Assembly: GCA_950097015.1 (NCBI GenBank)
Contig: CATNEN010000039.1
Coordinates: 2,976,001-3,040,000 of the forward strand
Direction of reading: 5' to 3'
DNA: 64,000 nucleotides
Source: Macrostomum hystrix
Taxonomy: Eukaryota; Animalia; Platyhelminthes
The notes under the pieces are model-generated. The model was given only the letters and a program-made list of their open reading frames with translations, was not told where the DNA came from and did no database searches. Positions 56,356 through 59,300 of the stretch are shown here, one piece after another. The position numbers and the translations under genes were made by a program. The stretch's first letter is position 1; every line of letters begins with the position of its first letter.

Positions 56356-59300
56356 ATGGCTACGGCGGCTGTCAGCGGCGAGGACGGCATCCTGCGCTTC
56401 GGCGACACTGTTGCCCTCTACTCGGTGGACGCTCGCGGATACGCCTTTGCCATGGAGTCTGGGTGAGCTGTCTGTCTGTCTGTCTGTCTGTCTGTCTGTC
56501 TGTCTGTCTGTCTGTCTGTCTGTCTGTCTGTCTGTCTGTCTGTCTGTCTGTCTGTCTGTCTGTCTGTCTTTCTGTCTGTCTGTCTGTCTGTCTGTCTGTC
56601 TGTCTGTCTGTCTGTCTGTCTGTCTGTCTGTCTGTCTGTCTGTCTGTCTGTCTGTCTGTCTGTCTGTCTGTCTGTCTGTCTGTCTGTCTGTCTGTCTGTC
56701 TTTCTGTCTGTCTGTCTGTCTGTCTGTCTGTCTGTCTGTCTGTCTGTCTGTCTGTCTGTCTGTCTGTCTGTCTGTCTGTCTGTCTGTCTGTCTGTCTGTC
56801 TGTCTGTCTGTCTGTCTGTCTGTCTGTCTGTCTGTCTGTCTGTCTGTCTGTCTGTCTGTCTGTCTGTCTGTCTGTCTGTCTGTCTGTCTGTCTGTCTTTC
56901 TGTCTGTCTGTCTGTCTGTCTGTCTGTCTGTCTGTCTGTCTGTCTGTCTGTCTGTCTGTCTGTCTGTCTGTCTGTCTGTCTGTCTGTCTGTCTGTCTGTC
57001 TGTCTGTCTGTCTGTCTGTCTGTCTGTCTGTCTGTCTGTCTGTCTGTCTGTCTGTCTGTCTGTCTGTCTGTCTGTCTGTCTGTCTGTCTGTCTGTCTGTC
57101 TGTCTGTCTGTCTGTCTGTCTGTCTGTCTGTCTGTCTGTCTGTCTGTCTGTCTGTCTGTCTGTCTGTCTGTCTGTCTGTCTGTCTGTCTGTCTGTCTGTC
57201 TGTCTGTCTGTCTGTCTGTCTGTCTGTCTGTCTGTCTGTCTGTCTGTCTGTCTGTCTGTCTGTCTGTCTGTCTGTCTGTCTGTCTGTCTGTCTGTCTGTC
57301 TGTCTGTCTGTCTGTCTGTCTGTCTGTCTGTCTGTCTGTCTGTCTGTCTGTCTGTCTGTCTGTCTGTCTGTCTGTCTGTCTGTCTGTCTGTCGATCCCGC
57401 AACCGACAATCCAAATCCTAATTGTTTCTGAGCAGCTCCAAGCACGACTGTCTGATGGTGGGCAACGGAGAGGACAGACTGCAGCCGCACAGCCCCGACT
57501 GCCAGGGTGAGTGGCTTTCGTAACTCTAATTAACAGCAGGACTACCAAGATGAGATTGAAGAAATTGAAGAAATTGAAGAAATTGAGATTGAAGAAATTC
57601 GCGTCAGGGTGTCCATAGTTGCCTATTTCCACCTCTTGTAGCCATTGAAGTTCCAGAAAATCCGTCTAGATAAAGGTAGGTGACCACAGAAGACGGAGAT
57701 CATGCAGGCACATTCGGGTGACATGCTGATAAAGTTTGAAGGTCTGGCAAGGCCGCACTGAGGCGCAGTGCTAATTTGTGTATAGGGGTGTATGAAATAC
57801 ACTAGCGCTTATGGGAAAATCTTCGGCCAGAAACATTAAATAACTCGACGGTCTGAAGAGATGGCGACTTGATTATTGTTTGAGAAGATGCGCAACAAAA
57901 AGTTGGCCCGTGCTCTTGAGTTTCGTGTGCTTGCGTTGTTCCGTTCGGGTGCAGCACAAAAAATTGTTAGGGGAGGAATCCCCCCTTGGTAGTTCTACTG
58001 TTAATTTTAATAACACGGACAGTAGAACAGTGGAGGCCAGACAAGATTTCTAGCAAGTTTTAAAAAAATTGAGATTCTCTTAAAAGAACAAAATGAAAAA
58101 ATCCGGAAACTTGTTGCCAGCCACATCTGTATTTATTTACTATTGAGAAGGGATTGACAGGTCAGAAGTCCCAATATCACACCCGACCGCCACCATCTGC
58201 TGCAGCCGTCTTGTAGGAATCCTTTACTGAAGCAGAATTCCCCTGGCAGCACTATCCAAGCTGCTGGACTTCGCTTGTACAGAACGCTGCAAATTTCGAT
58301 CGCCGCTGTCCGACGTGTCATCGTCCGAGTCAGCGTCCTTGCCTTTGTTGCTGAATAAGTTCTTCACAGACTGCACCACATTGCTCCAGAAGCCCCTCTG
58401 AGCTGGACGATTACTCGGCGCTGCCGCTGAGTCGTCTGAAATTGTTTTGTGAGATTAGAAAAAAGTGCTCAAAGTGCGCTTAAAGTGTGCTCAAATCGTG
58501 CTCAAAGTATTTGAGTTTGCTAAAAAAATAACCTCACAGTGTTCTCAAATTGTCAGTGTGCTTAAAGTGTTTTCAAATTTTGCTCAAAATGTGCTCAAAG
58601 TGTTCTCAAAGTGTGCATGAAACGAAACGTGCTCAAAGTAAGCCATAAAAGTTCTTAATTGTGTTTAAAGTTTAGGTGAGCTCAAATTGTGCTGCTCAGA
58701 AGGAAAGACTCACCGATCAGCAGGGCGATGGAAAGCACAAGAATGAACAGACAGGCAAGGCTTCTCATTCTCATTTGTTCCGCGGTTGGACGCAGTACGC
58801 GGTTGAGCAGATTCTGGACAGTGCGGACCTCAAGTCTCCGCTGATTTGGTTTCGGCTTATTTATGCGAGCCAACAAGGCCACTTGACCAGCTGTGCTCAG
58901 ATAAATCTGACACTGCCAACTACTCGTAGAATTGAAGAGTGCCTCTTGACTATCCCTGTCAGTGAATTCCCTGACCAAGTGTCAGCTGCTGTCAAAAAAT
59001 AGCTAAATTTTAAGTGACAATTAAAATTAGTTTCAGTGATTCGATCTTTAACTGAATCGAAGCTGCAAGATTGGAATCACGCGCATTCAGTGCTTACTAT
59101 GAGCTCGGCTTAACTATATGGGGTACGGAGTGGCATTTTGCTTGCTATCAGCTTTCACCAAAATGCTAATTTCCAAGTTCTTGCATACCTCTTTCAGTTC
59201 TGTCATTTGAAGTCTGTCCCCCTGACTGCTACAAGCTGCAGAAGCGGCACCAGAAACTGTTGGCCTCGGCGGTGGCTGGCGGCGAAACAGAAGCTCAGCC

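Follow-up and report, generated by a model that had tools for sequence, protein, structure and literature searches.

Organization of the locus

The DNA stretch studied here (hereafter, the window) comprises 64,000 nucleotides of the flatworm Macrostomum hystrix (assembly GCA_950097015.1, contig CATNEN010000039.1, positions 2,976,001 to 3,040,000 of the forward strand), and all positions given below are those of the window. Within the second intron of an ITPR-like gene on the plus strand, the window carries a small two-exon gene on the minus strand (hereafter, the nested gene), which is transcribed, spliced and predicted to encode a 90-residue protein with a signal-peptide-like N-terminus. In a first-pass annotation of the window, made without database searches, this locus had been interpreted as the gene of an antimicrobial or neuropeptide-like precursor. 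The exons proposed there (58774–58714 and 58435–58224), the reading frame and every residue of the product were reproduced from the translations of both exons. The nested gene consists of the following features:

58714–58967, minus strand: exon 1, based on the genomic sequence and a contig of sequencing run X4; coding part 58774–58714 (20 codons and the first base of codon 21)
58775–58967 at least, minus strand: 5′ untranslated region (UTR), 193 nt, no upstream ATG
58436–58713, minus strand: intron, 278 nt, phase 1, GTGAGT...TTTCAG, GC content 0.36; joint found in three runs
58111–58435, minus strand: exon 2, coding part 58435–58224 including TAA; 3′ UTR from 58223 to about 58111, contig ends at 58111, 58113 and 58117
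58132–58137, minus strand: AATAAA polyadenylation signal, 15–21 nt before the contig ends

Inspection of the sequence places the start codon ATG at 58774 and the stop codon TAA at 58226–58224. The G at 58714 is the last base of exon 1 and is followed by the donor GTGAGT, while the acceptor TTTCAG directly precedes the A at 58435, the first base of exon 2; the codon split between the exons is G + AC (Asp), and the intron is thus of phase 1. Joined, the two exons form a frame of 90 codons, in which exon 1 specifies a hydrophobic leader of 20 residues, covering the n- and h-regions of the putative signal peptide, and exon 2, read from 58433, adds 69 residues. The mRNA is at least 579 nt long, and the transcription unit spans about 857 nt (58111–58967). 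The track of open reading frames (ORFs), which was said to show only unrelated pieces at this locus, does contain parts of the nested gene, namely the minus-strand ORFs 58224–58379 and 58682–58978.

The intron of the nested gene is mostly occupied by an 11-bp minisatellite (58465–58616), whose consensus unit, as determined by Tandem Repeats Finder, is GCTCAAAGTGC on the plus strand. Related arrays with 68–77% identity were found on contigs C38, C1, C11 and C26 of the assembly, and an identical 31-nt stretch is present on contig C29.

The first coding exon of the ITPR-like host gene, located on the plus strand, ends at 56462 and is followed by a GTGAG donor. The other parts of the host gene that define the position of the nested gene are as follows:

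57436–57506, plus strand: host coding exon 2, 71 nt; GTGAGT donor at 57507, frame continuous from the exon ending at 56462
57507–59197, plus strand: host intron 2, 1,691 nt, about half filled by the nested gene
59198–59335, plus strand: host coding exon 3; acceptor AG at 59196–59197, exactly where a contig of run X4 starts; 3′ boundary approximate
about 60027–60330, plus strand: host exon matching the InsP3/ryanodine-receptor ligand-binding N-terminal domain (PF08709; E-value, 1.2 × 10−10)

According to our own reading of the sequence, the frame is unbroken across the first three coding exons, and a MIR domain is encoded further downstream of the PF08709 exon. These findings bear out the placement of the nested gene in intron 2 of an ITPR-like gene, as the whole transcript (58111–58967, minus strand) lies inside this intron and is antisense to the host. 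An entire transcription unit located in a single host intron on the opposite strand is a general metazoan arrangement, and the present locus is an ordinary example of it, with nothing unusual in its layout.

Transcription and splicing

The public sequencing runs used in this study are present as contigs, with the library type unrecorded. Seven runs from two studies contain part of the sampled stretch, and the best share of sampled words amounts to 0.49–0.60, which is about what the absence of the 278-nt intron would give; for run X3, which carries another organism label, the share is 0.17. Four of the runs (X1, X2, X4 and X5) were compared with positions 57700–59300. The comparison revealed contigs from runs X4, X5 and X2 in which position 58435 is joined directly to 58714, skipping 278 nt with the ends CT..AC on the plus strand, that is, GT..AG on the minus strand. 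The junction contigs of X4 and X5 (both organism C, study P2) match the genome without mismatches, and that of X2 (organism A, study P1) with one. The longest contig, 585 nt from X4, consists of 58111–58435 joined to 58714–58967, whereas that of X5 joins 58117–58435 to 58714–58855, and a contig from X1 covers 58113–58361. The spliced transcript predicted for the minus strand is thus present in three runs from two studies.

Contig depth is zero across the intron of the nested gene and also over 58996–59157, which shows that the transcript forms a unit of its own rather than a piece of host pre-mRNA. No second or intron-less copy of the locus was found in the assembly, which comprises 220,453,370 bases in 42 contigs, and the joined form can therefore only derive from RNA. 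The 3′ ends of three contigs (58111, 58113 and 58117) fall 15–21 nt downstream of the AATAAA at 58137–58132, which confirms the polyadenylation signal noted earlier on this strand and demonstrates that it is used. The orientation of the transcript is read from this signal and from the GT..AG borders of the intron.

The TATA-like box at 58866–58857, which had been taken for an upstream element, is located inside the transcript, as the X4 contig extends to 58967 (that of X5 reaches 58855), and its position within the transcribed region rules it out as the promoter. An AT-rich stretch 27–47 nt upstream of 58967, the end of the longest contig, is a candidate promoter only.

In run X4, the mean word depth of the nested-gene contig (58111–58967) is 80 versus 5.5 for the host contig entering at 59197 (59197–59294). 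Accordingly, transcripts of the nested gene may greatly outnumber those of the host, although contig depth is a poor measure of abundance and the difference is only a hint.

Predicted protein product

The features of the 90-residue product that were identified by inspection and by structure prediction are listed below:

58422–58435, minus strand: signal-peptide c-region (Asp-Asp-Ser-Ala-Ala), by inspection with the −3/−1 rule
58350–58406, minus strand: predicted helix 1, residues 31–49 of 90; AlphaFold2 predicted local distance difference test (pLDDT) about 77, hydrophobic moment 0.49–0.69
58299–58337, minus strand: Asp/Ser-rich acidic linker, 13 residues, 7 of them Asp
58230–58307, minus strand: predicted helix 2, residues 64–89, polar; AlphaFold2 pLDDT 61–70

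The N-terminus contains two Arg residues in the n-region and an h-region of 16 residues with a mean Kyte–Doolittle hydropathy of 2.99. The hydrophobic core is followed by Asp-Asp-Ser-Ala-Ala-Ala-Pro, in which Ser-Ala-Ala would occupy positions −3 to −1, with small residues at both −3 and −1. All three regions of a signal peptide are thus recognizable by rules, in agreement with the first-pass annotation, and signal peptidase would probably cut after Ala25 (between 58422 and 58421), leaving about 65 residues.

The AlphaFold2 model was computed from the single sequence, with no alignment, and has a mean pLDDT of 66.5. The charge of the predicted mature protein is unevenly distributed. Residues 26–53 include five basic and no acidic residues, while residues 54–90 contain eight Asp and four basic residues (Lys/Arg), which amounts to a charge of +5 for the N-terminal and −4 for the C-terminal half; the Asp-rich acidic tail described previously is therefore a real feature of the translation.

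The 17-mer that had been proposed as the mature peptide (58394–58344) overlaps helix 1. On a helical wheel, all seven of its hydrophobic residues fall within a 140-degree arc, and its polar face is formed by uncharged Ser, Asn and Gln. The hydrophobic moments, and the shares of shuffled sequences that reach them, depend on the peptide and on the scale:

17-mer, Fauchere–Pliska scale: 0.49, reached by 2.8% of shuffles
16-mer, Fauchere–Pliska scale: 0.58, reached by 0.4% of shuffles
13-residue core, Fauchere–Pliska scale: 0.69, reached by 0.26% of shuffles
17-mer, Eisenberg scale: 0.36, reached by 10% of shuffles

These fractions are generous, because the windows were picked after seeing the sequence. 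The net charge of the 17-mer is only +2, as it contains two Lys, one of which (Lys17) is on the hydrophobic face. Of the "cationic amphipathic helix" announced by the first-pass annotation, the amphipathic part is thus upheld by the AlphaFold2 helix and the hydrophobic moment, whereas the cationic part is not, given the net charge and the Ser/Asn/Gln face. Judged by its composition, helix 1 appears less like a classical cationic antimicrobial helix than like the weakly charged helices of the lipid-packing-sensor type.

Release of this 17-mer as an amide would demand cleavage at both of its ends. Sites recognized by prohormone convertases are KR, RR or RXXR, or a single basic residue with another basic residue at P4, P6 or P8. 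The N-terminal site of the 17-mer, AQR|G (after Arg34), is monobasic, with the second Arg at P5 and not at P4, P6 or P8, and the C-terminal site, KGK|D (Gly52-Lys53), has a single Lys, none of these positions being occupied by a basic residue. No dibasic site was found around the peptide by inspection of the translation. The sequence does contain a Gly-Lys pair, in which a basic residue comes after a possible amide donor, but both flanking sites are weak by the convertase rules; the 17-mer amide is therefore possible and not the default expectation, and its proposed release finds no support in the non-canonical cut sites.

Coding potential of the frame

Among random 579-nt sequences of equal composition, 4.4% contain an ATG-to-stop frame of at least 90 codons. 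The GC content is 0.48–0.55 in the exons versus 0.36 in the intron and 0.34–0.39 in the flanks, and within the frame that of third codon positions (GC3, 0.62–0.65) exceeds that of second positions. The 193-nt 5′ UTR contains no ATG, compared with 2.9 expected (P about 0.055), and the frame therefore begins at the first AUG. Introns of phase 1 located just after the signal h-region are common in genes for secreted peptides, and the phase-1 intron of the nested gene sits right after this region. Taken together, the first-AUG start, the signal peptide with its phase-1 intron and the GC3 make a random frame unlikely, and it is quite likely that the frame is translated into protein.

Search for relatives

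The products of the two exons were searched separately. No family match was obtained for the nested-gene product in Pfam, the exon 2 product had no match in a word-indexed protein library, and no match was found among PDB sequences at E-values up to 10 or in the protein Atlas (whole query and residues 6–33). Rfam analysis of positions 57400–59400 revealed no family. A HMMER search of the 69-residue query against 1.84 billion representative proteins returned four matches with a best E-value of 2 × 10−10. Pairwise alignments demonstrated that all four are artefacts, in which many weak repeat matches are summed, and P0001 (4179 aa; repeated motif about 14 residues long) and P0002 (a TPR-repeat protein) were accordingly rejected as homologues. 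The giant protein P0001 carries dozens of copies of a G-F-M-S-K-M-A-K-L-P-K-K-M-F-like motif, and it was the summing of these copies that gave the misleading E-value. The Pfam, PDB, Atlas, word-indexed and HMMER searches thus yielded no match to any known protein or transposon.

No paralogue of exon 1, exon 2 or the whole locus was detected in the assembly, where only the intron minisatellite recurs elsewhere, and the gene is single-copy in this genome. Since neither a paralogue nor a relative in the libraries was found, no family can be shown, and the suggested membership in an undescribed peptide family is not supported. Likewise, nothing in the searches supports a conserved neuropeptide, and the literature contained nothing on Macrostomum antimicrobial peptides or on a matching neuropeptide. 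The missing homologues hint at a fast-evolving or young gene, the Macrostomum genomes searched being limited to this one.

Interpretation of the nested gene

Based on the above, the locus is best read as a genuine gene of two exons, present in one copy and restricted to its lineage (an orphan), that encodes a small secreted protein in which amphipathic helix 1 is the working part, a reading to which we give slightly better than an even chance. According to it, transcription of the minus strand inside host intron 2 gives the mRNA of at least 579 nt, and translation from its first AUG would yield the 90-residue pre-protein, directed into the endoplasmic reticulum by the signal peptide that begins in exon 1 and is probably cut after Ala25. 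The secreted protein of roughly 65 residues would then consist of a basic N-terminal half with the amphipathic helix, followed by the Asp-rich linker and by helix 2, which is polar. With its hydrophobic face of Phe, Trp, Val and Leu, helix 1 may bind membranes or other hydrophobic surfaces, and the acidic half may keep the protein soluble or mask helix 1. The likely setting would be a fast-evolving gland secretion with a role in defence or reproduction, and further cutting to the 17-mer amide could take place without being the default. This layout would suit an effector of defence, a product of the reproductive glands or a signalling peptide alike; an antimicrobial or neuropeptide role is possible but unsupported.

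Several points weigh against this reading. The runs are contigs of unrecorded library type, and the strand depends only on the GT..AG borders and AATAAA. The evidence for translation is indirect and comes from this one genome. The signal peptide was assigned by rules, the structural model is a single-sequence prediction of the modest mean pLDDT given above, and on the Eisenberg scale as many as 10% of shuffles reach the moment of the 17-mer. Finally, "gland secretion" is a guess made by analogy.

A different explanation is that the locus produces a spliced, polyadenylated non-coding RNA, or is a very young proto-gene, driven by an intronic antisense promoter, and that its 90-codon frame is fortuitous. 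This would suit the lack of homologues and paralogues and a product that is short, of low complexity and largely disordered by prediction, and chance ORFs of such length, at 4.4%, are not vanishingly rare. As the frame nevertheless opens at the first AUG, no ATG being present in the 5′ UTR, starts with a classical signal peptide that ends where the phase-1 intron lies, and is enriched in GC3, we regard a non-coding transcript as unlikely. The host-defence precursor proposed by the first-pass annotation would be cut after Arg34 and Gly52-Lys53 and amidated, giving a 17-residue amphipathic antimicrobial or lytic peptide that is neutralised by the Asp-rich C-terminal propiece until processing. 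In its favour, the sequence does show a signal peptide, a short pro-segment, an amphipathic segment and an acidic tail, and a basic residue does come after the Gly. An orphan gene that evolves fast would suit an immune effector, and C-terminal acidic propieces are known from the precursors of fish piscidin/pleurocidin and tunicate clavanin. This proposal is weakened by two monobasic sites lacking a helper residue at P4, P6 or P8, by a net charge of only +2 with a polar face of Ser/Asn/Gln instead of Lys/Arg, and by the location of Lys17 on the hydrophobic face; in addition, the gene is single-copy, with no family or cluster, and its product shows no similarity to peptides in PDB or the large libraries. 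Taken together, these features make such a precursor improbable.

It is more doubtful still that the nested gene, possibly born de novo in the intron, represents the first of an undescribed class of linear host-defence peptides of free-living flatworms, amphipathic and weakly cationic, with a helix of 17–19 residues released and amidated via non-canonical monobasic processing. Of all these explanations, a neuropeptide or peptide-hormone precursor whose amidated product acts on a receptor has the least support. The signal peptide, the small size and Gly-Lys as a possible amidation signal would be expected of such a precursor, but canonical dibasic sites are absent, no relative was detectable in two large protein libraries, and a 17-mer with a long amphipathic helix ending in Lys-amide is atypical of flatworm neuropeptides, which renders this explanation very improbable.

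Comparison with known systems

In its presumed mode of working, the secreted mini-protein favoured here is most like two groups of host-defence molecules, the helical precursors with an acidic C-terminal propiece and the trematode helminth defence molecules (HDMs), and it belongs to neither, because no homology was found, helix 1 is at the opposite end from that of HDMs, and HDMs are reported only from trematodes. With the helical precursors (piscidin/pleurocidin, clavanin/styelin), the nested-gene product shares the signal peptide, the amphipathic segment, the anionic C-terminal region, a possible amide-donor Gly and a precursor length below 100 residues. It differs from them in the absence of sequence similarity and of canonical processing sites, in being single-copy and not part of a family, and in the charge of only +2 and the uncharged polar face of its 17-mer.

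The HDMs FhHDM-1 and Sm16 are small, mostly helical secreted proteins with a signal peptide and a functional amphipathic helix (PMC3093369, PMC7373315), and they are reported to be trematode-specific (PMC7373315, PMC11826375). Their amphipathic helix is C-terminal, whereas that predicted for the nested-gene product is N-terminal (residues 31–49) and its C-terminal helix is polar. No homology to FhHDM-1 or Sm16 emerged from the Pfam search or from the HMMER search against 1.84 billion proteins, no direct pairwise comparison having been made.

Among the prostate-limited transcripts of Macrostomum lignano, 31 out of 76 had no BLAST hit, and 38 out of 65 translated products contained signal peptides (PMC5977470); reproduction-related genes are also known for rapid turnover in Macrostomum (PMC10468722, PMC7336406). 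The nested-gene product resembles these putative seminal-fluid proteins in genus, small size, predicted secretion and orphan status, and they are often fast-evolving. They are defined by prostate- or tail-limited expression, whereas the likeness of the nested gene is one of sequence features, with no known sequence relation.

Regarding the composition of its faces, helix 1 is similar to amphipathic lipid packing sensor (ALPS) helices, reportedly described by Drin et al. in 2007, which likewise combine a bulky Phe/Trp/Leu/Val face with a Ser/Asn/Gln/Gly polar face and very few charges. ALPS helices are cytosolic parts of large proteins, whereas helix 1 is found behind a signal peptide in a putative secreted mini-protein.

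Neighbouring elements

A repeat of about 316 bp (57690–58005) is located just downstream of the nested gene. It has 1,775 first-look candidate copies in the genome, the other scored copies are 87–91% identical, and its depth in RNA-type contigs reaches about 2,500. Neither a terminal inverted repeat nor an Rfam match was found for it, and it looks like a short interspersed element (SINE)-like or other short non-autonomous element.

Tandem repeats are also present in the other introns of the host gene. Host intron 1 (56463–57415) is nearly all (CTGT)n microsatellite, about 0.95 kb in length, which begins directly at the donor of the first exon. Host intron 3 contains a minisatellite of about 0.6 kb (59382–60010) with a 12-bp unit, which reads as ...NSVT... 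repeats in one frame and stops about 20 nt short of the ITPR-like exon that follows. Elsewhere in the window, long plus-strand frames at 35580–38177 were recognized by eye as candidate exons of an AIF-like Rieske/pyridine-nucleotide-disulfide oxidoreductase gene, broken up by a repeat of about 50 bp.

Significance

The assembly was annotated with RNA-seq (PMC10468722), and a model of the nested gene may already exist in that annotation. The locus illustrates that a small spliced gene can be predicted to the base from the raw sequence alone, and it would add one more lineage-restricted secreted product to those of a flatworm model genus. If helix 1 is bioactive, the nested gene would provide one of the rare peptides of defence type from free-living flatworms and a tidy case of a young intron-nested gene.

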